DNA from: Macrostomum lignano
Taxonomy: Eukaryota
Length of the DNA: 64,000 nucleotides
Direction of reading: 5' to 3'
NCBI GenBank assembly: GCA_002269645.1
Contig: NIVC01001376.1
Coordinates: 1 to 64,000, forward strand
Shown here one piece after another: positions 10,822-42,012 of this stretch. The notes under the pieces were generated by a model, which saw only the letters and a list, made by a program, of their open reading frames with translations, searched no databases and had not been told where the DNA came from. The translations under genes and the position numbers were made by a program. Positions within the stretch are counted from its first letter, which is position 1. Each line of letters begins with the position of its first letter.

Positions 10822-10907
10822 ACAGTTTTGATGATAAAACAACTTTGGGTTGAGAATTCGAACGTTTTTGTCAATGTTATTTACCAGCCTAAGTAAGATT
10901 TCTAGTT

Positions 10908-15600: not shown

Positions 15601-18600
15601 GTTGCCGGGGAAACGGGGCACTAATAGGGAATTTCAATGGCTAATATGCTGGCATAGAAGGTAAGGCACTTAATATGGGGGGTTTGAGTAGAGAGGCGGA
15701 ATGCCTATTAGAGGATTAGATAAGAAGGCAGGGCGCCTAATGAATGAAGGGGGGTTTAGGAATAGGCAGAACGCCTTAGAAGACAGAATGTCTGGGAAAG
15801 GAATGGGAAGAACGCTTTGGCAGACAGGACGTCTCGAAAGAATAGGCAGCACGCCTTGAAAGATAAAAAGGTCTGGAGAGGATAGGCAGAACGCTTGGGA
15901 TTGGACAGCTCGTCCTGGGGAAGGAAAGGCAGCAATGCTCCCCTATTGAAAAACACGTTCTAGTTATTGAAAGGCAAGACGCCTTTAAAGAAGGAAGACT
16001 GACTCACTGGCTATTTTTAGAACAGGCGCTCAATGGAGGCCAACTGGCAGCTTCAGCAAGCTTGCCAGGAACCAAGAGAGGAAAGGTTGGTCTTACTTCG
16101 CTGTTTATTTTTCATATATATAGTTTTTCTAGACAAAATGACGGACAAGTTTTGAAAAATCATAATAATTTTGGTGAGGCATTTGTGAATAATACGTCAA
16201 GTTGTTTAATAATGATTTGTCTAAAAGATTGATTAATTTGTTGCAAACAAGAATAGTTAAAAGGAAAAGAACAGAATCCGTGATTTACGTAAAAGATATA
16301 TTTCAGTACTAAAACAAGGCAAGGCATGCAAAAGATTATAGCTGTCTCATTAACATTTTTATCAATTCTACTCATGAGAATATCAAATTCACGGTGGAAG
16401 GTGGAAGCAGAAGACTTCCTTTCTTAGACATTGACGTTGATGCCACCAATGAAACTATTTCTACCAGCCGTGTTTAGGAAACCTAGTTTTACCGGGCTGA
16501 TGCTTAGATTCGATGCCCTGTGCCCTAGACAATGGAAGGTTGGATTGGTTCTTAGATTTGATGCCCTGTGCCCTAGACAATGGAAGGTTGGATTGGTTCT
16601 TAGATTTGATGCCCTGTGCCCTAGACAATGGAAGGTTGGATTGGTTCTTAGATTTGATGCCCTGTGCCCTAGACAATGGAAGGTTGGATTGGTTCTTAGA
16701 TTTGATGCCCTGTGCCCTAGACAATGGAAGGTTGGATTGGTTCTTAGATTCGATGCCCTGTGCCCTAGACAATGGAAGGTTGGATTGGTTCTTAGATTTG
16801 ATGCCCTGTGCCCTAGACAATGGAAGGTTGGATTGGTTCTTAGATTCGATGCCCTGTGCCCTAGACAATGGAAGGTTGGATTGGTTCTTAGATTTGATGC
16901 CCTGTGCCCTAGACAATGGAAGGTTGGATTGGTTCTTAGATTCGATGCCCTGTGCCCTAGACAATGGAAGGTTGGATTGGTTCTTAGATTTGATGCCCTG
17001 TGCCCTAGACAATGGAAGGTTGGATTGGTTCTTAGATTTGATGCCCTGTGCCCTAGACAATGGAAGGTTGGATTGGTTCTTAGATTTGATGCCCTGTGCC
17101 CTAGACAATGGAAGGTTGGATTGGTTCTTAGATTCGATGCCCTGTGCCCTAGACAATGGAAGGTTGGATTGGTTCTTAGATTTGATGCCCTGTGCCCTAG
17201 ACAATGGAAGGTTGGATTGGTTCTTAGATTTGATGCCCTGTGCCCTAGACAATGGAAGGTTGGATTGGTTCTTAGATTTGATGCCCTGTGCCCTAGACAA
17301 TGGAAGGTTGGATTGGTTCTTAGATTTGATGCCCTGTGCCCTAGACAATGGAAGGTTGGATTGGTTCTTAGATTTGATGCCCTGTGCCCTAGACAATGGA
17401 AGGTTGGATTGGTTCTTAGATTTGATGCCCTGTGCCCTAGACAATGGAAGGTTGGATTGGTTCTTAGATTTGATGCCCTGTGCCCTAGACAATGGAAGGT
17501 TGGATTGGTTCTTAGATTCGATGCCCTGTGCCCTAGACAATGGAAGGTTGGATTGGTTCTTAGATTTGATGCCCTGTGCCCTAGACAATGGAAGGTTGGA
17601 TTGGTTCTTAGATTTGATGCCCTGTGCCCTAGACAATGGAAGGTTGGATTGGTTCTTAGATTTGATGCCCTGTGCCCTAGACAATGGAAGGTTGGATTGG
17701 TTCTTAGATTCGATGCCCTGTGCCCTAGACAATGGAAGGTTGGATTGGTTCTTAGATTTGATGCCCTGTGCCCTAGACAATGGAAGGTTGGATTGGTTCT
17801 TAGATTTGATGCCCTGTGCCCTAGACAATGGAAGGTTGGATTGGTTCTTAGATTTGATGCCCTGTGCCCTAGACAATGGAAGGTTGGATTGGTTTTTAGA
17901 TTTGATGCCCTGTGCCCTAGACAATGGAAGGCTGGATTGGTTCTTAGATTTGATGCCCTGTGCCCTAGACAATGGAAGGTTGGATTGGTTCGCTGCTCTC
18001 TTCACCGGGCCTTTTCCATTTGCAGATCTTGGAGGCTTTTTCACAATGAAATTGAAATCCTCACCAATTTGCTCCGCTACAATGGCTACCCTAGGAACTT
18101 TGTGTTGAAAATAGTCAACTCTTTTCTCAATGACAAACTGACTGAACCCACTCAGATGAAAGTTCGTGAAACCACCTCTGATTGTCCCTTGATCACTTTA
18201 ACTTTCTTTGGTGTTCGCTCTATTGAGTTTAAAATAAAACTGAAAAGCTGCTCCGTAAAGACTTAAACGCTCAAATCCGTGTTGTGTTTCGCACTGAAAA
18301 GGTTGCTAAGTTTGTCTCTAGGCTGAAATCCAGTGTTCCTCGTCCTCTCGCGGCAGGTGTCATATATAAATTTATTTGCTCTGAGGATCAGAGCATCTCC
18401 TACATTGGAAAAACTAAACGACACCTGTACACGAGGGTCAGAGAGCACTGGCTAAAAAACTCTGCCATTAACGAACACCTGCTAACCTGCAACAGTTGTT
18501 GTGACGCTGACACACACGAGATGATTAAGGCTATTGACTTTTGCGATTAGAGATCACATGCTCTCGCCTCTGCCTATTAGAAGCCCTGTACATTAAAACG

Positions 18601-21600
18601 AGACAGCCCACGTTAAATACGAGTAACCAACTCGCGATGGGTAAAGTTAGGGCCGCAGTACACTCCTGTGTGAGTGTGTGCCTGCGTACGTATCCGCGCG
18701 CTTGTGTGCCTGCTCAGGGGAGTCGGCGGAATGGGCAGTAATGCCTCTCGCCGGTTGTGTGCCTATGTCGCTTAAAGTGCGCCAGGGTGCACACAGCCCC
18801 CTGCCTCTAATAAAAAAACTCGCGATGGGTGTGTAAGACTTCCTTTAGGCTTCGCCTATTCTTGACTAAGTTTGGTCTCTGTTTCCGTTCTGATCAATAT
18901 AGAGTTTCACTCGATCTTGAGCCTAAAAGATCTTGCAACAGAGATCGCAAGTTGTTGGCCAAGACTCGTGCCTGTAGCACAAATAACGAACAGTTGTCTT
19001 AGGATTTCCGTGAGTTGCACTGGAACTCTTGCTGTGGATTCTTCTCCGGGAAGCCTCATTTCGGGGCCGAGGCCGTGTCTATTTTAGAGAATTTTAGGTA
19101 CACGTCATCCCCCGCCGCTGATTAGCAACGGCGGGGTGCCAAAAACAGACGCAGTAACATTAGATTAGTGCGTTGCTACGGGGCGAGAGAGTTATTTGAT
19201 AACTGTTCGTTGGTCGCATCAGGCGATGGTTAAAGGTCAGTTCGGGGTTCATTATTCGAGCCGATTTGCACGTCAGACCACTCGTGCGTCCCTCGGTGAG
19301 TCGTGTCTTTTGCTCCCTGGGCCGATCCATGTACGTCACCGCTGACCCTGGCCTGTTGACCATTGCTCTGTCTCGCCCGCCAGTCGGGGTATCATGTCGT
19401 ATCGATTCTCCTGGCACCGCGCCGACTGACTCTGCCTGGTACCTCGGCCGATTTTGAAATCCCGTTTGGTCTGAAATCTTGGGGGAAAGTGACAATTAAG
19501 TTATTATCATATCTATGATTTATTTCGCTTTCTTGCCGTTCTTTTAATTTCTCTCACTTAAGTGTCTTATCTCTAAATTGAACTTTCGCCCCCTGGTTTT
19601 AGCTTCTTACTTTGCCCTTTAGCGAACCTTTTATTTTGTTCAGACTTTTCTTAATTTCTAATCCCTATAGGGTGGGGGATAGCCGTCAAATCAGCATATT
19701 TTAGTTGACCTTGCAAATAACCGGACTGGAACGAAATCGACGTACATTCTCCCCCTACCAATTGGTTCTATTTTCCATTAATATGTAAAAGTTTTCAAAC
19801 CATCAAAATTCAATAAAATTACATGTACTTTCATATTTTCTCTCTCCACTCACTATATATACTGTTTACTTGTCAAATCATTTGAGTTACTTACTTGACT
19901 TAGCTTCAGAGGGCTCCGTGCGTCCGGAAACAGCGAGGAGGCGTTGCCGCCCATTTCGCTAGCCCCTGGCGACCACGGGCAGCTAGTGCTGCGGTGTCGC
20001 GCAGGGAGTTCCGGTGGCGCCGGTGTCCGCAGCGCGGTGCCCCTCCGGAGAGTCCAGGAGGTGGATTGTCGCTCGCTCGGAAGCCCCTAGGTAGCGGACG
20101 AGCTGGCAGAGAATCTCGGGCCTGAAAACGTCGGGGAGGTCCGGGTTTGGGCCGAGGTAGGTGAGCCTGACGTGAGTAAAGGCGGGGCATTCAAAGATGA
20201 AGTGCTCCGCATTCTCGACACCGGAGAGGCAGAAAGGGCATTCCTCACTGCGGATTTTTCCCTGGAGGTAAAGATGCCTGGCAAAGCAGCCATGACCCGA
20301 GAGGGCCATGGTCACCGCCCTGATGTCCGTGCGGTTGAGTCCAAGCAGGGCCCTGCGCAGGGCGGAGGAAGGACAGGGGACAGCCGTGCGGGATTGCCGG
20401 CTGTCGGGGGCGTTAGCCCACCTCTCCCTGTGCTTAGAAGCCACCCACTGGTTGATCCGAGGGTGACAACGGCGATGGGGGTGGGGGCCACGGGCAGGGG
20501 ACCAGTGAATGAACCGGTCGAGCCAGCCTTGGCCAGGCGATCGGCCAGCTCGTTGCCGGGGTCACCCGAATGCCCGGGGATCCACTTTAGGGACACTTTG
20601 TTAGAGGCGCCTAAGCGGTTGAGCTGCCCGATGCAGTCGAGGACTGTACGCGAGCAGGTGGTGGTGCTCTCAAGGGCGTGAATCGCCGCTTGACTGTCCG
20701 AGTGGAGGGTAATTTCCTTCCCCCAGACGTGCTGATTGTACAGCTCCATGGCGCAGGAGCTGATGGCGAGAACTTTGTTCTGGAAGACGGTGGAGCAGGT
20801 GCCGGTGTGTTGGGAGAAGGTCGCCACAGTTCTCCCTCCAGACACGATGCAGTAGCCGTATCCAGAGGCGGAGTTGATTTGGGACCCGTCAGTGAAGCAG
20901 TGGATTTCATGGGGTTTCCAGTTGTCTCTCGCTTCATGGCGTGGTGGAATGCTGGTTTTGAATTTGAGCGGGGGGCAGAGCGTGGACGGGATTCCGTCCG
21001 AGAGGGTCAGCAGGCCTCTCGCTGCTTCCAGGTCTCGCAGGCTGAGGTCGCCATGCGGCCGGAGGTTCCGCTTTCTGAAGGCAAACTGCTTCTGGATTTG
21101 GACACCCGCGTCAAGCAGACGACGGGTGGTTTTCATAGCCTCCCCTCTAACAAAGAGGTCGAGGGGGGAATGTCCAAGAAGGAGTTCATGCCAGCGAAGG
21201 GCGTTGAGGGAGCCGCGCTCATGATAGCTCGACAAGCGCGGCCTTGCACCCTATTTAAAACCTCAAGAACCCCTTTCACCTCTAGGGCACTGTTCCAAAT
21301 GAGGCCGGCAAAGGAGATGGCCGGTCTAACAATGGCAGTGTAAATCCACCAGAGGCGGCGGGGGGTGAGGCCCCAGGTAGCACCGAAAGCTCTGCGGATC
21401 TGCGCGAGAGTCGCGTGAGCTTTGCGGACTTTGGTTTGGACGTGCGGGGTCCAGCTCAGCCTGTTGTCGAGAGTGACGCCCAGACATCTGGTTTGTTTCT
21501 CCATGGCAACAGGTTTGCCATTGAGGGAGAGCGGTTCGATCCTCCAGTTTCGGCGGCTGGTGAACATGATAGCCACGGTTTTAGACTCAGAGAACCTGAG

Positions 21601-24600
21601 ACCGCAGCTATGTGCCCAGCGCTCGGCACGGTGGATGAAGGCTTGAAGGAGGTCCCTGAGGACCGCGGGTGACGGTCCAGCCACAGTGGCGGTAACATCG
21701 TCCGCATAGCCGACCTTCTGAACTGGGTCCGGATGCGGGCTGCAAAGCAGCTCGTCCATGACTAAATTCCAGAGGATCGGGCTGAGGACTCCACCTTGCG
21801 GTCCGCCTTTCTGGACTTCCACGGAGCGTGAGTGTCCCAGGAGGTGCGAGGTGGAAGTACGATGGGAGACTATGTACATGATCCAGCGGGTGAGGTGCTC
21901 GTGCGTGCCCCGGGATTCCAGGGCTCCCCTAAAGGCTCCAAAGAGCACATTATTGAAAGCACCATCAATGTCGAGGAAAAGCGAGAGCGCGTATCCACTA
22001 CCAAGCACGGCGCGCTCCAGCTTGTCGACAATGGCGTGCAGCGCACTTTCGATGGAGCGTCCAGGACGAAAGGCGTGTTGATTGGGGGAGAGCGGGGAGT
22101 TCCTCAGCTCTACGAGGAGGAGGCGCCAGAGTACCAACCGTTCCATCAGTTTGAGGAAGAAAGATGTCAGACTGATGGGGCGGTAAGCTTTGACAGAGTG
22201 ATAGTCTCCCTTCCCTGGCTTGGGTATGAAGACCACCGTGGCCTCTTGCCAGGCTTTTGGCACGTACCCGAGGGTAATGCTGGCCTTGAAGAGGTTGCAG
22301 AGGAGACCAAGAAACCTGTAATTTTTAACTGCCTCATGGAGGAAGCCAGGATAAATGTTGTCAGGACCCGGAGACTTGAAAGGAGAGAAGGATTTTGCGG
22401 CGCGAGCCGTCCTCTCTAGTGATGATGGTCGAAGCCAGGATCTGTCCGCCGGAGAGTGGTCCGGTGGGCCTAGCTGCGGTGCGGCACGTGGGAAAGAGCT
22501 GGTGAGCATAATGTCCAGCGATTCCCCAGGGTTCTCAGCGAGCCGGCCGTCCGGTCTTTTAATGACTGAGAGCTTTGACATTTTGTCGAGGGTGAGGGCC
22601 TTAACTACGCGTGAAGTAAGGCGGGTGCCTTCTAACTCCGCGCAGTATTGGCGCCATTTGTCGGACTTGGCTTTCTTGGTTTCACGCTAAAAGTCGCGGA
22701 TCGCTTCTTGGTAGGCGGCCAGGTCAGCTGGGTCCTTGCTCTTGCGAGCTTTCCGCTGGAGGCACTTTGCCTTGCGCCGGAGGGATCCAAGCGCCGGGTG
22801 CCACCAGGTGCGGATTTTTTGCCTTTGTAGGCTTTAAGAGGACAGGAAGCCTCATGGGCTGTCAGGAAGGTCTTGCTGAGCAAGTCTGCAAGGTCATCCA
22901 CTTCCTGACAGGTGGTTGGAGTGACGGTAGACAGCTGATCTGTCTGGCATTTCAGGGTTTCCGTGAAAGCCGTCCAGTCAGTGTTCCGGATGTTCCTTTT
23001 CCACAGGATGTGAGGCTTGGGGCAAGAGGATTGCAATCGAAAACGAACGAAGCGATGGTCAGACAGAGACTCCTCTTCGTCCCACACCTCCCAGTCCTTG
23101 ACTAAAGGAGTCAAGCCATGAAAGACGAGGGTCACGTCGAGGGCCTCCGTCCATCGCCCGTTGTCAAAGGTGGGGGTTGCACCAATGTTGCAAAACTCAG
23201 TATTGGTGGTGCAGATGTAAGCAAGGAGTTCCTCGCCTCTGCTGCTGGAGGTATTACTGCCCCAGTGGGTGTGGTAAGCATTGACGTCGCCCGCCACCAG
23301 CAGCTCGAACCTACGGTTAGAGCAGTAGTCCACGAGGGAGATGAGGTTGGGTGGAACCGCGGGGCCATCGCCAGGGATATAGATCGAGCGATGATGACCG
23401 TTAGGTTGGTGATAATGTGGTTGGACTGAATGACACAGAGATCTCTGTCAGAGAGGTCCGGTCTGTGCCAAGCTTTGAGATGGGTAGACACGAACATGAC
23501 TGCTCTGGGGTTTTGGGGGTCTTGAAAACAGTCAAAACCAGCAGGAATATACAGAATCTTACTTTTCTTTGTCCAGGGCTCCTGGAGTAGGATAATGCCC
23601 GGTTTCACAAAGTTTGCCACCCGCATCAGGTTGGTCGAGGCCGCGATGCAATGGTGTAGGTTTAGCTGCAGGATGTCCACTCCGGGGAATCCACGAGTGG
23701 TCCGCGCAGCTTCCTGCCGGCTCAAGGCGAGTTGTGCAGGAGAGCCGCCTCTTCTGCCTCGCCGATATCACCAGGCTCCTGCTCCATGGGCTCCTCCCGG
23801 ATGGTCTCCTTGGTCGAGGGCGATGCCTCCACCTGGGCGGCATTCTCGCTCTCGGCCCGGTTTTCCGGGGGGGCGCAGTGGTGACACTGGGTTGGGGGTG
23901 GCTGCGGTTGTGGGCCTTGGCGGTGTCCAGCAGCTGCTTCGCGCGCTGAGTCAGACCAGAGCAGATAGTGTTCCGGGCGGGTTTCCGGCCCTTTCCACGT
24001 CCGCCTGTTGCTGCAGCTTTCGCGGCTTTCCCTCTGACAGGGTCCACGACCTCGGAGGGGTCGTGACGAACGGGAGCTTCTTTTCCTGGGCATTTCCGCC
24101 CGGCAGAGCCCCCGCTCGCCCGCTTACGTTTCTATGGGGGCGGTGGGCGGGTAGCGTCAGACTCAAAGCTAAAAAGCTGAATCTGCATCAGCCCGACAGG
24201 GATAAGGGACATGTCCGGGTAGCGGAGCATCCAGCTATCCGACAGTCCAAGAATAGCCGTGAAACCGTCTCCGCCTGGCTTGGAGATGGTCTCGTGAACT
24301 ACGACGCCATTAGCCGGTAGCTCCGGGTTGGTAGCCACTAGCAGGTGACGCAGCTCGTCGGCCTTGGTGATGCAGCTGCGAGCCGGGATCCAGGCACGGT
24401 GCCGGTGTGTCCGGGGTCGCTCGTCCTCCCTGTAGATAAACAGGTTTTCCAGCTCCGTACCCCAGTCGAAGGATTTTAGCACCTCGAGGAGCTGCTGTCC
24501 TGACTGGCTGTCGGCGGGCTGGATATGGATGGCTTGGTCCTCGACTTTCGTCTTTTGGACTGGAGTAGCGGTACCGCTCAAGGCCATCTTGACCAGGTGG

Positions 24601-26784
24601 GAGTCCAACCTGCGCCAGATAAGGTCGAGCTGTTCGGCCGTAAGAGGCGTCTCCTGGCCTTGAATAACCAGGGCCGGCTGCCTCTTGGCCATAGCCGCGT
24701 AGGTGCGCTTCGGCTTGGTGGTTTGGCCAGCACCCCCCGCTTTGGATCCCTCCACAGCCGTGGGAGCTTCCACACGGGCAGAGGTCCCGCCACGGGAGGG
24801 GCCAGCCGCACCAGGAGCTTCGGCGGCATCTGATGCATCTGACCGGCGCGCGGGGTCCACCCCCTTGTCGGATGTCGACTCCTCCGCGGGGTTCGCAGAG
24901 ATACCGGCACCCTCCTCGGAGGTGGCCGGAGGGGAGGCTTTCGCATTCCTCCGTTCCTCTGCTTTGCGCTGGAGAAAAGCTTTGTAGCGAGCAATGCTAC
25001 GGGCCTTCTTTTTTGAAATCTGAGGTCCGCTGTCCTGTTGTCCAGCCGCTCCGGCATTGTCCTGAGCGGCGGCAGGGGCTGACTGAGAGGCACCGGGGGT
25101 TCCGGTGTTGCGAATGTCCGGCTGGGCCGCGGTGCCAACCTCGGTTGGTGCTCCAGCAGCCTCGGACGTGATGGATGTAAGTGAATACTCCATGAGTCGC
25201 TGAAAGGCGAATGGGGACTAGAGGTGAGAAGCTGCTGGGCCGTAACCCCAAACCCACCAGCCAGGCCAAGAGGTAGCGACCGGGGGGTGGCTTAAGCCCG
25301 TACCGGCCCGACCGCTATCAACCGAGAAACTCCCCGGCTAAGAGCCCGGCTTGGAAAAACCAGAGGCCGAACCAAAGGACCATCAGCGCGGTACTACACT
25401 GGGCCCTTGAGGGAAGCAGGAGGACTGCCTCCGGAGCCTGCGGAGCCTGCGGACTGGCCGCATACCCTGTTAAGGTCAGAGGTTGATACCTGTTCCTCAG
25501 AGCCGTGGCCAGAGGTACCTGACACGCACAGGTTCACTTCCGGGCGGAGCCCGTACCCAACTTGGCCAACAGGCCACGGATGGGTTGCCGTCGCCGGAGC
25601 CCAGTCAGTCCAGCAGCCCTAGAGCTGCCTTGAACACATGCGGGGCGTGAACCCCTGGGTCGGTTTGCGAGTCAGCTTGGAGAGAGTTCTCCTGCCATTC
25701 CTGCACCAGAATAGAGGGGGTGCAGGTGTGTAGGATCGCAGACCTTAGCTCGTAGGCCTGGTCTGTCTCATGCTATACAGGCGTGCTGAACCCACCTTGC
25801 ATGCTGCTAAATCATTTGGTTTTCAAATAAATTTCGACCCTGAAGATGTCCAATAGTTGGACGAAATGCATCGGAATTTCAAATAAATATAACTAACACT
25901 TCATGTTGATATTGAATTTAATTATCTATACTCTATTAAGCGAGCCACTTTACCTGATTTCTAGTCTGTGAAATTTCTAGTCCCTTGCTGCATAGTTAAA
26001 TCTAATTTCACAAGCTTGTTGTTACAATTAAACCATAGGCTCAAAATCACTGATAAAAAACAAGCAAAATTCTATACAGCCTTGAGACTTGAATAAGCCG
26101 TATATCTCCTACAATTATGGAATATTGATGAAGAATTTGTTAATTGTACCAACGGTATCTTCATCGAAAAGATTTCTAGCTCGATACTACAACTAATAAG
26201 TTATTTTTATCGATCCTTGTCGGTCTCTAGCACTGCATTTCTATGAAAAATCCTTCCTTCTGCTTCAGCTGTCCATGACTCTACTACTCTCCATGTTTGA
26301 TATTTCAGGCGCCGCCGGTTCTGGAGGAACATCCGGTACGGCTTCGATACCCGGTGACACTCCATACTACGGCTACGGAGGAGCGAATGGCCAGCCCGGA
26401 TCCAACAACCCCGCTGGAAGGAAAACAGGCTCTTACGTCGGTGGCTGCGGCGCCGGGTGGCTGGGAAAGGCAGCAAACCCACCAAGTAACATGTACGATG
26501 GAGGTCGAGGCGGCAGTCTGGCTGATGGCTGGATTTGTGACAGCGCTGGGACTGCTGGCGGCTTCGGTGGCGGAGGCGGAGGAGCTAATTACCCGGTGAC
26601 GAGTCTCAACGCCGGTGGCGGTGGCGGTGGCTACAGCGGCGGCGGTGCCGGCGTCGCTGGCAATCACGGCGGCGGAGGCGGCGGCTCCTTCTGTGGCGGC
26701 AGCGGCTGCGCCGCCACCAGCGGCGGCAACACTGGCAGCGACCAGGGCTTCGTCAAGGTGTGGCCGATTGATCAATGCAATTAG
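12606..26784 (+). CDS. Secreted PAN/apple + ALK/LTK-like glycine-rich-domain protein, copy 2 (exons 12606-12645, 12724-13050, 13236-13562, 26309-26784)
   Basis: Same 4-exon phase-1 architecture. Signal [19 protein letters not shown]. Exon 3 ends ACYTTNG|gtaat and no exon 4 follows nearby. The orphan exon after tatttcag at 26309 (GAAGSGG...[12 protein letters not shown]) is in the right phase and orientation. No stops or frameshifts in the joined CDS. The 12.7-kb join is inferred. Confidence 0.78.
13789..13974. mobile_element. MITE with ~72-bp imperfect terminal inverted repeats (GGGCC ends, PIF/Harbinger-like)
   Basis: gggcctgtcaacttaagcttataaagtgg...cattctgctc is mirrored by gagcagaatg...agcttaagttgagaggccc with about 8 mismatches. 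No clear TSD. Confidence 0.7.
14335..14625. repeat. Low-complexity GT-rich tandem repeat (tagtttgcagttgg-type modules)
   Basis: Repeated agtttgcagttggtagtttgtagattgttgtttgc units and degenerate variants. Confidence 0.75.
15217..16349. mobile_element. Solo LTR (1133 bp) inserted in the Penelope RT
   Basis: Starts TGTGATAG and ends CTGTCTCA (TG...CA with imperfect terminal IR). Flanked by TTAA at 15213-15216 and 16350-16353. Removing it restores the RT frame ([18 protein letters not shown]). Confidence 0.75.
16503..17990 (+). repeat. 48-bp tandem array, 31 near-identical copies, derived from Penelope RT coding sequence
   Basis: Unit cttagatt(t/c)gatgccctgtgccctagacaatggaaggttggattggtt encodes [16 protein letters not shown]. 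1488/48 = 31. Flanked in frame by [10 protein letters not shown] and RCSLHRAF. Confidence 0.95.
18643..18816 (+). mobile_element. 5'-truncated SINE family B copy with A-rich tail and 14-bp TSD
   Basis: TSD aactcgcgatgggt at 18629-18642 and 18817-18830, tail ctctaataaaaa. Matches the 3' half of 10908-11278. Confidence 0.85.
19983..23725 (-). pseudogene. LINE ORF2: AP endonuclease, reverse transcriptase, RNase H, CCHC finger (frameshifted)
   Basis: [32 protein letters not shown]; RT motifs [59 protein letters not shown]; RNase [31 protein letters not shown]; SGHG...CPFC...AEHFIFEC. Confidence 0.92.
23722..25193 (-). pseudogene. LINE ORF1 (gag-like, DUF4780-like segment), frameshifted near the C-terminus
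   Basis: 353-aa ORF 24132..25193 has a low-complexity N-terminus and [13 protein letters not shown]...GLMQIQLF, which resembles LOA ORF1 proteins. It continues in other frames to ~23722. Confidence 0.6.
25838..25876 (+). ncRNA. Minimal type I hammerhead-ribozyme-like motif (degenerate stem I)
   Basis: cc-CTGAAGA-t-gtccaa(tag)ttggac-GAAA-tgca-TC-gg: core CUGANGA/GAAA/UH with a 6-bp stem II and a palindromic short stem III. Stem I is only ~2 bp. Confidence 0.4.
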
Positions 26785-27651
26785 TGGGGCTTTTTGGGAG
26801 AAAAGCTAAAATGATGGCGTATCGAAGGAAACTGGAAGCGAAAATTGCCAAAGCCCTTATAACAAATCATTTTAAAAAGTTTTTTTGTTAATTTATTTAT
26901 AAAATCTCTTTTCGAAGTTATGCAAGATTTTTGTGGCAGAGTCAACGGAAGTTTGAATTACGCTTTTTCTGTTTTTGAATTTTAATTTTACAATCGTTTT
27001 AAGGAAATTTTTACAAACTAAGCCAAAATTATCATTATTTAACTTTTCTCTGCCTCCAATTTCACTCGCATGCCCTATTGAATGCTGTAGTGTTCGTTGT
27101 CGCCAGAATATTTATATTTTTTTATTCAAAAGGCACCTTTGGCTTTTGCCATTGTTTGTTATAATCGATTTTTTTATTGAAAAAAAGCTTTTTATTTGAC
27201 AATAGTAGTCCACATATACTTAATTTTCTCTGGTGATAATTTATCTTGTTTATGAAGTTATTTTTCTCAAATGCCGGCACGTCAATCAATGCTTTTCTTT
27301 TGTACCAGATTCTTAATCTTTATTTTGTTACTCAAGTCCAGCTTATTCTTTTTGTTTATTTCTTCTAAACTAAACTTATTGCTTAACTTTTCAACCGGCC
27401 GTATTTATCCGCTACGACGCGTCTATTTTAATTGAAACAGTTGAAACTCACTACCCGAATATACGAAATATACTACTACCCTTGTCCACGTAGTTTTGCA
27501 CATTTTTTAATGAAGCACTATCAGCTAGCTACTCAGATACCTATAATGTGCCCGTTGTTTAGTTTTGGAAGTGCAGCGGATAAAGTGAGGTACAAATAAC
27601 ATGCAAGATTGGATCAGCTGATAGACATCGATGCAGTCTGCTGGACGCGAT

Positions 27652-27970
27652 AATAATAATAATAATAATTGTTTGCACCTACCCCAATTGGGCCAGATGT
27701 GCAACCGACAGCTCAGCCGCAGCTATTTGCACGGCGCATCTGAAGGCTGCGCACGGCTGTTCAGTCCAAGGACTGGGGGGGGGGGGGGGTCGCCACACAC
27801 CCTGAATTACCACAGCCAATGCTGGCACCCATTTTACAGCTGGGTGAACTGAAGCAGTGTAGAGTAAATTGTCTTGCTTAAGGACACAAATTGTTCCAGT
27901 GTGATCGGGAATCGAACCCCCGACCTTCAAGTCGTACGTGAGTCCGATGCTCTAACGACTGGGCTACACC
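27652..27970 (-). mobile_element. tRNA-derived SINE family A, full length, (ATT)n tail
   Basis: A box tggtgtagcccagtcgttag, B box ggttcgattcc, CORE-like tgtgtccttaagcaagac...ttcagttcacccagctgtaaaatgggt, and a tail. 7-bp TSD acgcgat at 27645-27651 and 27971-27977. Confidence 0.8.
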
Positions 27971-27979
27971 ACGCGATGC

Positions 27980-29435
27980 AACCTGCTCTAGAATGAGATA
28001 GAGCTGATAGACACGATACAACCTCAACCTGGTTAGACACGATGGAACCTGTTAGACACAATGCAACCTGTTAGACACAATGCAACCTATTAGACAATGC
28101 GATTCCTATTAGACACAATGCAACCTGTTAGACACAATGCAACCTATTAGACACAATGCAATTCCTATTAGACACAATGCAACCTATTAGACACAATGCA
28201 ACCTATTAAGGCCCGCCCTTCGCATCGGCCGAGTTCAGCAGCTTCCTGGCGGATCAGGGCGCCCGGCACCATCGAATCACGCCTCTACCCTCAGGCTAAC
28301 GGCGCAACGGAGCGGTGCAACCAGGGGCTGAACAAGGCCATTCGCGCGGCGGTCCTCGAAGTTCGGGACTGGACGCTGGCCTTGGACGAATACCTGAGTA
28401 CCTGGCAGCGTACAGGCGCACTCCACACTGCGCCACAGGCGTCGCACCGGCTAGTCTGCTATTTGGCAGGCAAATCAACAATGTAATCCCGAGCCTCCAA
28501 CACTCGCAGCCCATCGACGCGACAAGAGCGGCCATCGCCGACCGCGACCGCCAGGCCAAAGAGGAGATGAAGCGGCTCACCGACCGACGCTCCAGGGCAG
28601 CAGAGCACGCCATCCGTCCAAGCGACCGCGTTCTGAGGCGTCTGCAATCCCGGCAGAAGACCGACTCCTTCTACGAGCCAGTGCCATGGACCGTGGCCGA
28701 GGTCCAGGGACCGTGGACTCCCTGCTCATGCAGCGTGACGACTTCGTCTGCCGCAGGCATGCCACGCAGGTCAAGCGGCTGTCCGAGCAGCCTAAGTAGT
28801 CCGATGAGCAGCCGCTCCAGCCGCCTGGCCTCCCTGAGCCCATGGAGCCAATCGCCGCCCGGCCGTATCCCCGGCAAGCAGAGGACCCGGAGAGGAACTA
28901 CAAAGAACCTGACCTGCGCAGAAGCTGATCGACTCTTAAATGGACTGCACATGCACGAACTGTTAGTCACTTTTTATGGTTCCCTTTGTGTTTCCCCCGT
29001 TACTTTTAATCCATTCGAGGAGGAATGTAATGCCACTCTGGCCAGTGCTAGCTTGTAAATTGTATTAGCAAGTACATGTTGCTACTCAAATTATGTACGT
29101 AAGGCACGCGGCTCTTGTGCACGTTGCAATCGGATCGCTTCCAAATATATAAATATTGTCCCACCCTACTAGGAGGGTTAAGGCCTTTTTCTCGCACGCC
29201 ACAAACACAGCTGACTCCAGAGTCATTACAGACACAATGCGACCTAGACACAATGCGACCTAGACACAATGCGACCTAGACACAATGCGACCTAGACACA
29301 ATGCGACCTAGACACAATAGAACCTGTTAGACACAATGTAACCTGTTAGACACAATACAACATGTTAGACACAATGCAACCTGTTAGACACAATGCAACC
29401 TGTTAGACACAATGCAACCTGTTAGACACGATGCG
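27980..29435. repeat. 19-bp minisatellite (tgttagacacaatgcaacc) in two blocks, 27980-28208 and 29231-29435
   Basis: Tandem units on both sides of the Gypsy fragment. A 16-bp variant (tagacacaatgcgacc) adjoins the LTR. Confidence 0.9.
28209..29230 (+). mobile_element. Ty3/Gypsy retrotransposon 3' fragment: integrase core, PPT and 3' LTR
   Basis: PFASAEFSSFL...HHRITPLYPQANGATERCNQGL, YRRTPHCATGVAPASLLFGR and SDRVL. PPT gaggaggaa at 29017-29025. LTR 29026-29230 is bounded by TGTAATG...CATTACA. Confidence 0.88.
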
Positions 29436-30372
29436 ATAGATTTTTTGGAGCAGTCGTGGCAGTTAGGTACGATGGCTGACAACCAGGAAAGGGGACCTCA
29501 AGCAGCTCAAGGAAGGAACTGGAGTAGCCTCCTCTTGGCGGGTCATGATACAAACTAAGATCCTGCTTGCTTCTAGCTATCAATATTTGCTTCTAATAGC
29601 TACTGCTGTACAGAATAAAATACCGTATATTTGTTAAAAATCGTCGAATATTCTAGATAAAAACTTTTAAAAAGCTCGTATACGCCAAGCACTAAGCCAA
29701 AATCAAACTTTCTTCACTGACTAACCAAACATCTAAAAGCCTTACGGATTATGAAATCCATCATCCTCCTCTCTACACAGCTAATTTATTTCGTACCCTA
29801 CTAAGTTTTCAGTTGCTCCCACTCAGATAGATTTTCGAAGATAACAGATGAATCGACTTGTTTAATATTTTTTACAGTGTTTCTGAAGTAAATATTAAAA
29901 ATTAAAAGAAAAGTTTTAAATTTTATTAGAAAACAATTATTGGAAATAAGACGCGAAACAGGAATAAAAACAAAGAATAGAAAACTGAAATTTATGTTGT
30001 GACTGAGTTCTAGGACAGGTTTCCGCACAAAGATTGATTATAAATAAACATTTTTAATTCGCAAATAGCACTACAGAAATATTCGCGTTTATAATTGCGT
30101 AAATTGATCTTTTGAAAACACAATTTCAGAAAAAGAAAAGAGAATAAAAATTTAAAATAAACACAAATATTTGCAATCAACAAATTTAGTGAAACGAGTG
30201 CTACAGTACATGAATAGATTGATGGATAGTCCGAATTTAATAGGCAGGTCATACATTGTGAAAGTAAGAAAGTTCTCGAATGCCTAAACTCTTGCCAATT
30301 AATTTTGCAAACTGAAATTGGTCTCTGCTGAAAATCTTCTACTGAATCGACGAAAATTAAGTCGTAAAATTT

Positions 30373-33219
30373 TCAGCCACAAGTCGGAATCGACTGCACC
30401 TTGACGAAGCCCTGATCGCTGCCGGTGTTGCCACCGCTGGTGGCAGCGCAGCCGCTGCCGCCGCAGAAGGAGCCGCCGCCTCCGCCACCGTGGTCGCCAG
30501 CAGTGCCAGCGCCGCCGCCGCTGTAGCCGCCGCCGCCGCCTCCGCTATTATCATCTTTTAAATCTTTGCCCCCACCGCCTCCACCGCCGCCGAAGCCGCC
30601 AGCACCGGCGCCGCCTTCATCGGCTGGGGCGCCGCCCAACCAGCCGTCCGCAAAGCTGCCGCCCCGGTCTCCATCAGTCGTTAAGTTTCTGGCGTTGACA
30701 GCCTTGCCCAGCCAGCCGGCTCCGCAGCCTCCAATAGCATCGTCGTCTTTCCTCATAGAGGGATTGTTGGACCCGGGCTGACCATTCGCTCCGCCGTAGC
30801 CGAAGTACGACTCGGCCCCGCCAAACGAATTCGTCCCGTTCACTTGAGCTGCCCCGTCAGCTCCTGTAGGCAACAATTACATTTGCACTTGCAAAACATT
30901 TTTACAACCGAACTGAAAATTAATTTTACTGAGTCTGTTATATAAAGACCAGGCTAGTGAAAAGCACAACAACCTGTAACCGTACAAAGATGACTTTATC
31001 TCTATGCGTTTGCTTAAGTTTGCTATCTTCATTTAAACGTTTTTTGAAGATCTATCGAAGTTAGTACTATCGGTAAGATCGAACCAGAATCCGACTATTC
31101 AAACATCCTGGACAACTGAGGCCATGCAGTTCTGGCTCCAAAATTAATTACCACTTTGTGGCAATATTTTAAATTCAACATTTAACCCGCTTAAAGTCTT
31201 GATGATTTTACCGTCTTTTCTGTGGCAGCCACCGCCGCCTCCGCCAGCAGCTAGCAGCAGCAGCGGGTTGCCTGAGGCGTTGACAGTGTACACGAAGCTG
31301 CCTCCGCCGCCACCTCCGCCGCCTTTATCGCTAGCGGGGCCGCCCTGCTGTCCGACAACAATGGTCAGCAGGGTGCCTGCAGTCAGGCTGAAGTTGCCTG
31401 CCATGACTGCTCCGCGACCGCTCGGTTTTCCGGTTCCAGGACTCCCGCTGGCACCAGCAGCTTCAATCCGGTAGCAGTGGGTGGTGTCGATCAGCAGCTG
31501 CTGGATGGTGCCGTTTCTACCGGTGCTGGAGTCTGGAAGATGGAGTTTAGCAGCATCCGTAAGCTATAGCCTGACTTGAGCAGGTCAAAGGTTTCATGGA
31601 AAAAGTTTTGCTAAACGAGCGATGAAAGCTGTCAATGTACCATGTTCCTATCATTGCAGTTGTCTAACAACTAACTCGTACTTTGGCGCCCCTTGGTGCT
31701 GGCGCCCCTTGGTGCTGGCGCCCCTTTGTGCTGGCGCCCCTTGGTGCTGGCGCCCCTTGGTGCTAAACCCCTTTGGTGCTAAAGCCCAGGGGCGTAGCCA
31801 GGAATTTTGATGGGGGGGGGGCGTGAGTTAGAGGGCGCCTGCTTCTTATAGGGGGGCGCCAGTTTCTTTTAGGGGGGCGCCAGTTTCTTTTAGGGGGGGG
31901 CGCCAGTTTCTTATAGGGGGGGGGGGCGCCAGTTTCTTTTAGGGGGGGGCACCAGTTTCTTTTAGGAGGGGCCGGGGCACCAGTTTCTTTTAGGAGGGGC
32001 CGGGGGCACCAGTTTCTTTTAGGGGGGGGGGCGCCAGTTTCTTATAGGGGGGGCGCCAATTTCTTTTAGGAGGGGCCGGGGCACCAGTTTCTTTTAGGGG
32101 GGGGGCGCCAGTTTCTTATAGGGGGGGGCGCCAGTTTCTTTTAGGAGGGGGGCGCCAGTTTCTTTTAGGGGGGGGCGCCAGTTTCTTTTAGGGGGGGGCG
32201 CCAGTTTCTTTTAGGGGGGGGCGCCAGTTTCTTATAGGGAGGGGGGCGCCAGTTTCTTTTAGGGGGGGGGGCGCCAAGGCCAGAGTTGGTGATTGGGGGT
32301 GGCACGGCCCCCCTTGCCCCCCTCTGGCTACGCCCCTGCTAAAGCCCCCTGGTGCTAAAGCCCCCTGGTGCTAAAACCCCCTGGTGCTAAAGCCCCTTAG
32401 TACTAAAGCCCCTTGGTGCTGGCGCCTTTAGTAGAACCCAAAAGTAGCACCCAAACACGGTGCCCACAAGATGGTCGCTGCATGTCGCTAAATGCTAATG
32501 CCCAATAAAAAATCCTTTGCAGTTTTTAGGAAAAAGTGAGTGACTATAGAGTCCAATGTAATATTTCTAGATCCTAAAGAAGCTTTGAACACAGAAATTT
32601 AGAAAGATAGTATCATTATTATTTTTTAGTTTTTTTCACTGAAGACTAGAATTTTTTCAATTTCAATTTCTATTAAATGCTCGTTTAAAGATTAACAAAG
32701 ACGCTTACTGAAAAACTCTCTGCTGAAGTTCAGGTTAACCATTGCCGATGTGGTTGGCGGGTCTGCTGTTGTTGATGTTATTTCGGGCGGCGAAGTAGTT
32801 ACCGTTGTTGTAGTTGTTGCTTGTTGGGTATCGAACGTCCACACCTTGGCCCCGGCCTCCGAGCCCAGCAGTCTCTGCACGCGACTCCCGGCCGAGTGAC
32901 CTTCGTACACCATGGCCATCTGGCAGAGCCCGATGCTCTCGTGAGCCACCGCCACTGAGCAGCCCTCCGCGTGGCACTTAGCCGCGCAGTCAATGCTGGA
33001 GGTGATGCCAGTGACATTGAAAACCTCGCTACTCACCGAGTTGTCAATGACAAACGGCCCGGCTACCAGTTTGAAGAATTTGCTTTGTGTCGAATTGCAT
33101 GTTGCTGGAAAAGTTTTCAACTATGAATAAAGTAACGTGCTTAAAATTTTAAGCGATTATTAATTCGAGAGATACCTACCGAAAATTAGACAAAAAGCGA
33201 AGGCTCTTGGCAAAATCAT
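30373..33219 (-). CDS. Secreted PAN/apple + Thr-rich linker + ALK/LTK-like glycine-rich-domain protein, copy 3 (exons 33219-33180, 33104-32709, 31532-31212, 30863-30373)
   Basis: Intact frame with phase-1 GT-AG introns; exon lengths 40, 396, 321 and 491 nt. Signal MILPRAFAFCLIFATC; [26 protein letters not shown]; linker QATTTTTVTTSPPEITSTT; same GRD motifs; ends GFVKVQSIPTCG*. Confidence 0.88.
31787..32338. mobile_element. hAT-type MITE carrying a G-rich tandem repeat, in intron 2 of copy 3
   Basis: Perfect 15-bp TIRs caggggcgtagccag / ctggctacgcccctg and 8-bp direct repeat ctaaagcc at 31779-31786 and 32339-32346. Interior is ~21-25-bp ggggggcgccagtttcttttag units. The host site is itself a short tandem repeat. 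Confidence 0.75.
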
Positions 33220-38049: not shown

Positions 38050-39900
38050 AAGCTCGAAAAATCACTATAGCTCGAAAAGTCACATCGTCGAAAACTGATT
38101 TAGCAGACACCATCACAAGCTCGAAAAGTCACAGGCTCGAAAAATCAAATCGTCGAAAAGTTTAACAATCACCATCGCAAGCTCAATAGTCACTAACTCG
38201 AAAAGTCACATCGTCGAAAAGTCACATCGTCGAAAAGTCATACTGTCGAAAAACTGATTTAGCAACAACCATCACAAGCTCGAAAAGGCACAAGCTCAAA
38301 CCCTAACCATAACCTAACCCTAACTAAGGCACAGTTAAACTCTAACCCTAACCCTATCCCTATTGAATCGTTCGTTGAACTACATGTATTTTTCGTTTGT
38401 ATTCGATCGGTTCTTTTCTAATTTTAGCATCCAAACTAGCAATCTACGCCCCCCAACGGGGAGCCAAAGAAATGCAATACACGTATTTTTAATAAGCTAC
38501 ATGTAGCCTTGAAATCTTAAAAAATCTCCTGTCAAACTTCTAACCCTAACCAAAACCCTAAATTCAATATTTTGTCCATGAGTTTTTGCATGATCGATGC
38601 TTCTATGATTTTTGGCATGACGCTTCCATTGTTTTTGCATGACGCTTCCATTATTTTTGCATGATGCTTCCATGATAAACATTTTTAATAAGCTAAATGA
38701 GCCAAGTTATAAGCTACCCTAACCCTAACCCTAACCCGAATCTTACCGCAATAACCCTGAACCTAACCCTAAACCTAAACCCTAATACCAACCCTAACAC
38801 TAACCCTACAGCCTGACATCTGCATAAGTTTGTGAAGAGCTAGTAGTATTTTTTAGCTTAGTATCTTAGCGTTAGGGAGCCAAAAATACAGTACAAGTTT
38901 TGTAATAAACTACATGTAGCATCTCTTTGCAATATACCTCAGAAGTCCCTTGTAAGCCTTGAAATGTCAGTAATTCCCCCCACAAGCTTTAACAAATCAA
39001 CTTCCCCCCTTGACATCTCAGCGATGCCCCAAATAAGCCTTGAAGTCTAAAAAAAATCTGTCAACCTTCTAACCCTAACCCTAGCCTAACCCTAACCCTA
39101 ACCCTAGCCTAACCCTAAACCTAACCCTAGCCTAACCCTAACCCTAACCCTAACCCTAACCTAACCCTAAAGCATTGTAATTTCAGTAATTCTGAGTCAT
39201 TATAGCACTACTACAGCATTATAGCGATTCCCTGCAAGCCTCGACATCGTAGGGATTCCCAAATGAATCTCTTAAGTTTGACATGAAGCTTCTTTTTTTA
39301 CACTATGCTTTTTCTATCAGCGAGCCCTGAGGAGCCAACAAAAAATGTAATAAAAAGTTTTCAATAAACTACATGTAGCTTCTGACTTTAGCCTTGAAAT
39401 CTCATTTATACCCCCGTGAGCCTTGACATCTCAGCTATTCCCCCCGTAAGCCTTGACATGTCAGCGATGCCCCCCATAAATCTTGAAATCTAAAAAAATC
39501 CCCTGTTAACCTTGAAACCCGATAAAATATAACCCTCAACCCACACCTGACCTAAACCTAACTTTAACCCAACCTAAAGCCTTGAAATCTCAGCAATTCT
39601 TCTCCCCTAAGCCTTGGCATTTTAGTGTTTCCTTCTTTAAGAATCACAGCACTATAACGATTTCCACCAAGCTTTGACATCGTAGCAATTCCCAAATGAA
39701 TCTTTTAACTTCGACATGACTTTTCTTATATGTATACATAGTGCTACTTTTATTTTTTACATGACTCTGCTTCTATCAGCGCCCCCCCCCTGTGGCGAGC
39801 CAACAAAGAATGTAATAAAAATTGAGTAAAGTACATGAACTTTGAAGTAGCTTCTGACTTTTGCTTTGACATCTCAGAAACCCCCCCCCCACCTGTAATC
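38050..39900. repeat. Composite repeat: (tcgaaaagtcac)-type array, then ~420-470-bp degenerate units each containing (CCCTAA)n telomere-like tracts
   Basis: CCCTAA tracts near 38300-38360, 38716-38810, 39070-39170 and 39535-39580. A gagccaa...aataa...ctacatgtagc anchor recurs near 38460, 38876, 39332 and 39797. Confidence 0.75.
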
Positions 39901-39999: not shown

Positions 40000-42012
40000 A
40001 CATGACGCTTCTTTTGATTTTTACATGACGCTTCTTTTATTCTTCCATTATTCTTCTTAATTTTTTAAATGACACTTTCATTAGTTTTTATATGAGGCTT
40101 CTATGATTGTTTGCATGACGCTTCTATGATTTTTACATGACGCTACTATGATTTTTACATGACGCTTCTATGATTTTTACAGGACGCTTCTATGATTTTT
40201 TAAATGACGCTTCTATGATTTTTTACATGACGCTTCTATGATTTTTTACATGACGCTTCTATGCTTGTTTACATGACGCTTCTATGATTTTTTCATGACG
40301 CTTCTATGATTTTTTACATGACGCTTCTATGATTTTTTCATGACGCTTCTATGATTGTTTACATGACGCTTCTATGATTGTTTACATGACGCTTCTATGA
40401 ATTTTTACATGACGCTTCTATGATTTTACCATGACGCTTCTATTATTGTTTGCATGACGCTTCTATGATTTTTACATGACGCTACTATGATTTTTACATG
40501 ACGCTTCTATGATTTTTTCATGACGCTTCTATGATTTTTTACATGACGCTTCTATGATTTTTTCATGACGCTTCTATGATTTTTGCATGACGCTTCTATG
40601 ATTAATACATGACGCTTTTATTATTTTTTCATGACGCTTCCATGATTTTTTCATGACGCTTCTATGATTTTTTTTGACGCTTTTTTTACTTTTACATGAC
40701 GCTTCTATGATTGTTTGCATGACGCTTCTATGATTGTTTACATGATGCTTCTTTTATTCTTGCATTATTCTTCTTAATTTTTTAAATGACACTTTCATTA
40801 GTTTTTATATGAGGCTTCTATGATTGTTTGCATGACGCTTCTATGATTTTACCATGACGCTTCTATTATTGTTTGCATGACGCTTCTATGATTTTTACAT
40901 GACGCTACTATGATTTTTACATGACGCTTCTATGATTTTTTCATGACGCTTCTATGATTTTTTCATGACGCTTCTATGATTTTTTATGACGCTATTTTGA
41001 CTTTTACATGACGCTTCTATGATTTTTTCATGACGCTTCCATGATTTTTTCATGACGCTTCTATGATTTTTTATGACGCTTTTTTGACTTTTACATGACG
41101 CTTCTATGATTTTTACATGAGGCTTCTATGATTTTTTCATGAAGCTTCTATGATTTTTTATGACGCTTTTATGACTTTTACATGACGCTTCTATTATTGT
41201 TTACATGACGCTTCTATATTTTTTTAAATGACGCTTCTACGATTTTTTACATGACGCTTCTATGATTCTTTAAATGACGCTTCTATGATTTTTATAAGAC
41301 GCTTTTACGCTTTTTTACATGGCGCTTCTATGATTGTTTACATGACGCTTCTATGATTTTTTACATGACCCTTCTATGATTTTTTACATGACGCCTCTAT
41401 GATTTTTATAAGACGCTTTTACGATTTTTTACATGGCGCTTCTATGATTGTTTACATGACGCTTCTATGATTTTTTACATGACCCTTCTATGATTTTTTA
41501 CATGACGCCTCTATGATTTTTTAAATGACGCTTCTATGATTTTTATACGGCGCTTCTATGATTGTTTACATGACGCTTCTATGATTTTTTACATGACGCT
41601 TCTATGATTTTTACATGAGGCTTCTATGATTTTTTCATGACGCTTCTATGATTTTTTATGACGCTTTTATGACTTTTACATGACGCTTCTATGATTGTTT
41701 ACATGACGCTTCTATGATTGTTTACATGACGCTTCTATTATTGTTTACATGACGCTTCTATATTTTTTTAAATGACGCTTCTACGATTTTTTTACATGAC
41801 GCTTCTATGATTCTTTAAATGACGCTTTTATGATTTTTTACATGGCGCTTCTATGATTGTTTACATGACGCTTCTATGATTGTTTACATGACGCTTCTAT
41901 GATTTTTTACATGACCCTTCTATGATGTTTTACATGACGCTTCTATGATTTTTTAAATGACGCTTCTATGATTGTTTACATGACGCTTCTACGATTTTTA
42001 ACATGACGCTTC
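40000..42012. repeat. 20-21-bp satellite (catgacgcttctatgattttta), ~2 kb
   Basis: Roughly 90-95 tandem units. A ~120-bp interruption is duplicated at ~40020 and ~40745, and a few seed units occur at 38575-38680. Confidence 0.93.

Follow-up and report, generated by a model that had tools for sequence, protein, structure and literature searches.

Tandem genes of Macrostomum lignano predicted to encode secreted proteins with an ALK/LTK-type glycine-rich domain

In solved structures of the receptors ALK and LTK, the glycine-rich domain (GRD) is a bundle of 14 Gly-rich polyproline-II (PPII)/polyglycine-II (PGII) helices, the inner ones of which are almost pure glycine (PMC13243192, Table 1; bioRxiv 10.1101/2023.11.25.568672), and reviews of PPII bundles group ALK with the adhesin gp38 of phage S16 as one structural class. 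The fibre tip of the cyanophage Pam3 combines a conserved glycine stem with a distal tip that is hypervariable and serves for receptor binding, and its structure resembles both S16 gp38 (2.7 Å over 52 Cα atoms) and Caenorhabditis elegans ALK (7LIR; 2.6 Å over 125 Cα atoms) (PMC9608196). Here we describe a 64,000-nt stretch of the genome of the flatworm Macrostomum lignano (contig NIVC01001376.1, positions 1 to 64,000; hereafter the window), in which three predicted genes, termed c1, c2, and c3, carry terminal exons (exon 4) that are rich in glycine motifs. A first-pass annotation had likened these exons to gp38, as an invariant glycine framework that bears hypervariable loops.

We consider it quite probable that c2 and c3 belong to a tandem cluster of three genes for small secreted proteins, each composed of a PAN/Apple-like domain and a TG domain of the ALK/LTK type, and that the identity of their 3' ends arose by gene conversion; the product may be a soluble binding protein. 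The locus adds to a known domain family a secreted architecture that has not been described before. Each predicted protein would comprise a short signal peptide, a four-cysteine PAN/Apple-like domain, and a TNF-like β-sandwich fused to a glycine-rich subdomain, with a Thr/Pro-rich linker added in c3. The PGII helices would pack into a honeycomb core and, because only glycine fits there, the motifs would be kept in phage fibres as well as in cnidarians, flatworms, and human ALK, while the segments between the helices would be solvent-exposed connectors tolerating both substitutions and indels.

Gene models, domain identity and predicted fold

The gene models were built from the sequence and their exon junctions were checked, which gave three predicted four-exon genes with GT-AG at every junction (Table 1). 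A tblastn search across the 64-kb window found no copy beyond these three. The intact products of c2 and c3 are 389 and 415 amino acids long, respectively. The interval 26309-30863, which had been annotated as a single feature, does contain the terminal exons quoted for it, but it spans two genes: it is made up of two convergent (tail-to-tail) terminal exons, that of c2 on the plus strand and that of c3 on the minus strand, plus 3.6 kb of repeat debris between them. Exon 4 of c2, which is 66.7% identical to c3 (tblastn with c3 as the query), codes for the glycine-rich subdomain and the last two β-strands of the TNF-like subdomain. The stop codon lies 7 codons past the last β-strand in all three copies, and the DNA downstream of it is either the 3' end of the convergent neighbor or repeats. 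Hydrophobic N-terminal leaders and about nine N-x-S/T sequons in c3, both read from the sequence, fit a secreted glycoprotein. The N-terminal module has four cysteines in a C-x3-C...C...C register, as in PAN domains. An assignment as ALK/LTK receptor orthologues was considered and rejected on gene structure, since the predicted proteins are without an EGF module, a transmembrane helix, and a kinase domain. The spliced genes, LINE-like retroelements, and minisatellites carried by the window mark it as eukaryotic.

The Pfam profile of the ALK/LTK glycine-rich domain, PF12810, matched full-length c2 with 28.4 bits (gathering cut-off 24.5, E 2e-6), and the scores of the homologues P0041 (34.3 bits) and P0005 (23.8 bits) lie on either side of the cut-off. 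When exon 4 alone was searched against Pfam and the PDB, no sequence match was obtained, because the composition correction removes the signal, which emerged with the full-length proteins. With full-length queries, phmmer against the PDB returned ALK ectodomains and actin alone; these matches were non-significant (E 0.17-2.4), and the ALK alignment was colinear through all glycine motifs.

The database search yielded 1119 homologues at E ≤ 1e-3. The best of them are M. lignano proteins with the same layout and 39-44% identity, which bear the UniRef names 'Apple domain-containing' or 'WSC domain-containing', and the family is large and multi-copy in this species. The next-best are cnidarian PAN(+EGF)+GRD proteins, misnamed 'loricrin-like', in which the PAN and EGF modules precede the domain; many proteins of ~300 amino acids from ENA assemblies were found as well. 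The automatic names of the stand-alone GRD homologues (P0001-P0120) are misleading, and also include 'PE-PGRS family protein', 'receptor protein-tyrosine kinase', and 'putative lysozyme-like protein'. In the literature on PF12810, on glycine-rich Macrostomum proteins, and on the 'loricrin-like' cnidarian proteins, no functional study was found.

In an alignment of 59 sequences, the glycine motifs and the adjoining strand motifs are at least 90% conserved, and they are present in c1, c2, and c3. This colinear set includes YxI.A.GA.GG, L.IVVGQ.GG, GGGGGSFVY, LLxAAGGGGG, GGFGGGGGG, and GGGGGS[FY]C. The motifs that the first-pass annotation had listed for exon 4 (GYGGxNGQxG, GGCGAGWxGK, DGxxGGSxADGW, GGFGGGGG, and GGGGGxSGGGA, together with a C-terminal block of 32 residues) were all recovered from the sequence.

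The fold was assessed by proxy, using the AlphaFold model of the M. lignano homologue P0002, which is 41% identical to c3. The block-mean pLDDT of this model is mostly 73-94 over the GRD, with a value of 53 in one 10-residue block near the loop here called loop C. DSSP gives the glycine stretches of the model no secondary-structure assignment. In a Foldseek search of the PDB, the 21 best matches were all TG domains of ALK/LTK (E 2.7e-11 to 5e-7, probability 1.00, TM (target) 0.40-0.65), with 21-26% identity over the structural alignment, and at E ≤ 0.001 the model matched ALK/LTK ectodomains only, among solved structures. The cyanophage Pam3 fibre 7YPX followed in the list (E 5.6e-3, probability 0.82). 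Among predicted viral structures (BFVD), 77 proteins matched at E ≤ 0.001 (E down to 6e-15, TM 0.47-0.48, rmsd ~3 Å), including many phage virion, tail, and 'glycine-rich domain' proteins as well as proteins of giant viruses.

The motifs were mapped to individual helices by combining the colinear ALK alignment with the ALK residue ranges of PMC13243192, under an assumed offset of 670 for chain 7mzy_A (Table 1). From this mapping we infer that the glycine framework corresponds to the PGII helices of ALK; the motifs would be invariant because the core helices must be glycine and the connectors are exposed. Across those columns of exon 4 that the family conserves, the ratio of nonsynonymous to synonymous substitution rates (dN/dS) is 0.12-0.16. 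Third positions of glycine codons are free to vary in the 5' part of the exon, where synonymous sites are saturated (pS 0.59-0.71) and the glycine motifs are nonetheless retained. As judged from these rates, the conservation of the framework is ordinary purifying selection on the predicted fold. The earlier proposal of a PGII scaffold is supported by the PF12810 match of c2, by the ALK/LTK fold matches of the P0002 model, and by the PGII helices known in ALK; such a scaffold is already known for the ALK fold.

Sequence mosaic of the tandem copies

Over a block of 96 nt that codes for HGGGGGG...FVKV, the three copies are 94-97% identical to one another, also at synonymous sites. The first-pass annotation had called this block almost nucleotide-identical, and the identity is real; to read it as extreme constraint does not hold, since the mosaic of synonymous divergence (dS) points to gene conversion or concerted evolution. 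Over the last 35 conserved codons of exon 4, dS is 0.12-0.33 for all pairs, versus 1.2-2.2 for the rest of the exon (Fisher p 4e-8, 1.5e-5, and 7e-3), and the identity of the block collapses directly past GTCAAGGTG. Codon bias was considered as the cause and rejected, given that third positions of glycine codons are free upstream and identical inside the block.

The other exons show a comparable patchwork with different partners. In exon 2, dS is 0.10 for c1-c2 versus 0.67-0.73 for the other pairs, and in exon 3 it is 0.14 for c1-c3 versus 0.71-0.83. At the nucleotide level, c1 9098-9514 is 96.4% identical to c2 12593-13010, a tract which takes in the 5' untranslated region, exon 1, intron 1, and most of exon 2, and c1 9613-9943 is 95.8% identical to c3 31552-31222, which takes in the end of intron 2 and exon 3. 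These results indicate that c1 is probably a chimera of c2-like and c3-like parts, produced when the tandem paralogues recombined or underwent non-allelic gene conversion. For the near-identical 3' block, the best explanation is a gene-conversion patch, one of several: exon 2 would be common to c1 and c2, exon 3 to c1 and c3, and the 3' end to all three. The homogenized exon 3 and 3' end of exon 4 code for the TNF-like strands, and the part that is not homogenized codes for the glycine bundle and its connectors.

Table 1. Predicted features of the cluster and its surroundings in the 64,000-nt window, and putative ALK counterparts of the glycine motifs
Feature	Position	Strand	Remarks
c1 exon 1	9111-9150	+	Predicted signal peptide; GT-AG junctions
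c1 exon 2	9228-9554	+	Cys domain; GT-AG junctions
c1 exon 3	9633-9953	+	TNF-like strands and first poly-Gly helices (predicted); GT-AG junctions
c1 exon 4	10341-10821	+	GT-AG junction; -1 frameshift at 10640-10641 (CCCC run 10638-10641); c1 coding sequence 1169 nt
c2 exons 1 to 3	12606-12645, 12724-13050, 13236-13562	+	GT-AG; predicted joining of exon 3 to 26309
c2 exon 4 (terminal, including stop)	26309-26784	+	AG acceptor at 26308; frame continuous with that of exon 3
c3 exons 1 to 3	33219-33180, 33104-32709, 31532-31212	-	GT-AG junctions
c3 exon 4 (terminal, including stop)	30863-30373	-	GT-AG junction, canonical acceptor
Loop A, c2	26401-26439	+	13 residues, ends before GGCGAGW
Loop A, c1	10433-10471	+	Contains SNSDNNDEDYYP
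Loop A, c3	30771-30733	-	Contains NNPSMRKDDDAI
Loop C, c2	26584-26613	+	10 residues, starts after GGFGGGGGG
Loop C, c1	~10634-10653	+	Cut by the frameshift
Loop C, c3	30567-30544	-	(G)KDLKDDNS
Near-identical 3' block, c2	26665-26760	+	Putative gene-conversion patch
Near-identical 3' block, c1	10702-10797	+	Putative gene-conversion patch
Near-identical 3' block, c3	30492-30397	-	Putative gene-conversion patch
GGGGGGGGS and AAGGGGGG (exon 3)			Putative counterparts ALK 816-824 and 841-848
10-residue motif and GGCGAGW			Putative counterparts ALK 869-875 and 878-882
DRGGSFAD			Putative counterpart ALK 899-906
GGFGGGGGG			Putative counterpart ALK 914-927
13-residue motif			Putative counterpart ALK 931-943
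HGGGGGGS			Putative counterpart ALK 950-956
c2/c3 spacer	26785-30372		Belongs to neither gene
Spacer minisatellites, 19 bp	28033-28208 and 29230-29434		Two arrays, unit TTAGACACAATGCAACCTA-like, flanking the integrase-like open reading frame (ORF)
Integrase-like ORF fragment in the spacer	28315-29058
tRNA-like stretch in the spacer	~27900-27980		No ARAGORN call and no Rfam match
c2 intron 3	13563-26308	+	12.7 kb
Reverse-transcriptase-like ORF in c2 intron 3	21133-22581	-	Retroelement
Other retroelement ORFs in c2 intron 3	20312-21235, 22632-23333, 24132-25193	-
Minisatellite in c2 intron 3	16503-17991		48 bp x 31; yields long artefactual ORFs on both strands
Linker in c3 exon 2	~32830-32741	-	c3 only; Thr/Pro-rich, mucin-like, ~30 amino acids, between Cys domain and GRD
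Minisatellite in c3 intron 2	31833-32276		G/C-rich, 23/47 bp
M1 aminopeptidase (aminopeptidase N-like) exons	2396-5300	-	Best named match of an exon: M. lignano Peptidase_M1, 86% identity over 18% of the query
Interstitial telomere-like repeat	39069-39170		(CCCTAA)n-type
Satellite, 23 bp	40000-42013		~90 copies

Connector variability and alternative explanations

The variable loops that had been quoted for the three copies were located in the sequence at loops A and C, including 12 residues within loop A and the 10 residues of loop C in c2 (Table 1). Among the window copies, identity is 0.83-0.95 in the motifs versus 0.19-0.43 in the connectors, and the mean pairwise identity is 0.25 in loop C, 0.21 in the connector containing LGGAP, and 0.26 in loop A. 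By colinearity, loop A sits at a 2-residue turn of human ALK (PMC13243192). In nine cnidarian-type homologues, compared at an equal overall identity of the exon-4-equivalent part (0.66, a figure that for the window copies is inflated by the converted 3' block at 0.98), the corresponding values are 0.94 (SEDNGAS), 0.81, and 0.52. The pattern is thus not shared by homologues of similar divergence, which keep the very connectors that differ in the window copies. Likewise, among M. lignano paralogues with 87-91% mutual identity, the exon-4-equivalent part carries amino-acid differences at 3-5 times the density found elsewhere (Fisher p 7e-4 to 3e-5), and these concentrate in connector 0, loop A, and loop C. 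By these comparisons, the fast evolution of the connectors is real and lineage-specific, and it is compatible with either relaxed constraint or diversification.

A possible, though in our judgment rather unlikely, explanation is that the connectors form one diversified recognition surface, as in the tips of gp38 and Pam3 gp24, with diversifying selection acting on the paralogues and gene conversion homogenizing the scaffold. The contrast with the cnidarian-type homologues and the clustering of differences between close paralogues both speak for such a surface, as does the position of the conversion patches, which lie in exon 2, in exon 3, and at the 3' end and leave the loop-coding part untouched; in addition, phage homologues of the fold bind their receptors through a variable distal tip (PMC9608196). 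The substitution rates in the family-variable columns speak against it: dN is 0.55-0.84 and dN/dS is 0.35-0.54, below 1, for three copies with saturated dS (1.1-2.4) and indels in the loops, a comparison of little power in either direction. Neither positive selection nor the proposed hypervariability of the loops is shown by these values, and relaxed constraint accounts for the same data. We regard as somewhat less likely still the broader proposal that a flatworm-lineage expansion of secreted PAN-GRD proteins constitutes a diversified recognition family, directed at microbes, glycans, or mating partners, on a phage-type PGII scaffold, in which conversion would maintain the uniformity of the scaffold and of the TNF-like parts, and selection the differences between paralogues in the exposed connector 0, loop A, and loop C.

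Several points weigh against the reading of c2 and c3 as members of a cluster for secreted binding proteins. On its own, c3 scores 12.1 bits for PF12810, which is under the Pfam cut-off because the composition correction penalizes runs of glycine. The fold evidence is by proxy, through the model of P0002 rather than through c2 or c3. The assignment of the N-terminal module to PAN/Apple is weak: a Pfam search for a PAN domain gave no match at E ≤ 10, and in hhalign the module aligned with cnidarian PAN domains weakly (E 0.15), with the cysteine register aligned. As a single gene, c2 would require a 12.7-kb intron filled with transposable elements, and c1 is frameshifted. Finally, the role as a soluble extracellular binding protein, with specificity in the PAN-like domain and/or in the exposed connectors of the glycine bundle, is one that we purely infer.

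Some of these points bear also on an improbable alternative, namely that the cluster is decaying and non-functional, a set of pseudogenes and fragments in which the loop variation is neutral drift. In exon 4 of c1, 'STP' and 'TNDN' are in separate frames, with just CC between the codons ACC and ACG; the loop 'STPTNDN' of the first-pass annotation is therefore made of residues that are indeed encoded, but not in one reading frame. The upstream frame continues into Ala/Pro-rich nonsense that ends at 10831, the conserved C-terminus lies in another frame, and c1 as assembled has lost the last glycine helices and the two C-terminal strands. Decay would also agree with the 12.7 kb, packed with retroelement ORFs and a 48-bp minisatellite, that separates exon 4 of c2 from exon 3, and with a database search in which a near-identical protein was not found. 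However, open frames, canonical splice sites, and every residue that is invariant in the family are retained in c2 and c3, and dN/dS is low on the framework columns, as given above, and below 1 in the loops. The site of the c1 frameshift is a homopolymer of C, and conservation persists in the downstream frame, which differs from c2 by 1 nonsynonymous versus 3 synonymous changes; either c1 is a pseudogene, in that case a recent one, or its frameshift is a homopolymer error.

It is less probable still that the proteins are soluble decoys or co-receptors which resemble the ALK ectodomain and modulate the animal's own ALK-type receptor. The predicted TG fold is the same as that of the ligand-binding region of ALK/LTK, but identity to ALK/LTK is 21-26%, there is no EGF-like module, the N-terminal partner is PAN-like as in the secreted cnidarian homologues, and the family in M. 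lignano is large and multi-copy. To our knowledge, ALKAL ligands are restricted to vertebrates, which also counts against a decoy function. Least credible of all is a glycine-rich structural protein of low complexity that is disordered and lacks a defined fold. The automatic names of homologues ('loricrin-like', 'PE-PGRS') and a glycine content of ~35% suggest one, but across 59 homologues the motifs are colinear and tied to specific positions, and the confident P0002 model, which matches solved ALK/LTK domains, already disfavors it.

What is known of the ALK glycine-rich domain comes mostly from a single pair of vertebrate receptors and, on the structural side, from a few phage fibres, and the stand-alone secreted GRD proteins of flatworms and cnidarians exist only as misnamed database entries. 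If the connectors form a binding face, the family would represent, in animals, the strategy by which phages set variable tips on a rigid glycine scaffold, and would give a hint at the role that the ligand-binding domain of ALK had before a kinase was attached to it. At present, the locus chiefly offers a clean case of a fold that is already known, with a clear gene-conversion mosaic among tandem paralogues.

Comparison with known systems

The TG region of ALK/LTK (PF12810; PDB 7LRZ, 7MZY, 7NX1, 7N00, 7LIR) belongs to the same domain family by profile and by predicted fold, and the colinear glycine motifs match its 14 PPII helices (PMC13243192). In contrast to these receptors, the c1-c3 proteins are small, secreted, and multi-copy as predicted, and carry no EGF-like module, transmembrane helix, or kinase. 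The domain at their N-terminus is PAN-like, whereas ALK/LTK have MAM/LDLa, and loops A and C span 8-13 residues in place of the 2-3-residue turns of ALK.

The closest proteins in layout are the 'Apple/WSC domain-containing' GRD proteins of M. lignano (for example, UniRef A0A1I8HRN4, A0A1I8GD17, A0A1I8I814) and the cnidarian PAN(+EGF)+GRD proteins, which share the leader, the Cys domain, the GRD, and the motifs. Identity to the M. lignano database proteins is, however, only 39-44%. The cnidarian homologues differ in that their connectors are conserved, while those of c1-c3 vary, and in a long insert after VGQxGG that the flatworm clade is without.

With the tail fibre gp24 of cyanophage Pam3 (PDB 7YPX/7YFW) and the glycine-rich virion proteins of phages and giant viruses, c1-c3 probably have the TNF-like plus Gly-rich architecture in common, to judge from the modeled fold of P0002. 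The Pam3-type phage proteins form trimeric fibre tips, have a helical shaft at the N-terminus, and come with a chaperone, whereas c1-c3 are predicted animal secreted proteins, with introns in their genes and a PAN-like domain.

The adhesin gp38 (PDB 6F45) has the same design, a PGII/PPII bundle of conserved glycine motifs bearing variable loops (bioRxiv 10.1101/2023.11.25.568672), and in the window copies, too, conserved glycine motifs bound segments of varying length and sequence, a likeness in design rather than in ancestry. In gp38, 10 PPII helices sit on a β-helix, where the c1-c3 family would have a TNF-like sandwich. No match to 6F45 was found by phmmer in the PDB at E ≤ 10, and gp38 was absent among the 50 Foldseek PDB matches listed and among the viral matches listed. 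The likeness to phage adhesins that had been proposed for these exons thus stands as far as the fold matches to the Pam3 fibre and to phage proteins go, together with the link drawn in the literature (PMC9608196), and does not extend by sequence, or among the Foldseek matches listed, to gp38 itself. The relation to gp38 is one of analogy, or at most a very remote one, and the model of P0002 places the flatworm family in the ALK/Pam3-type group, not with gp38.

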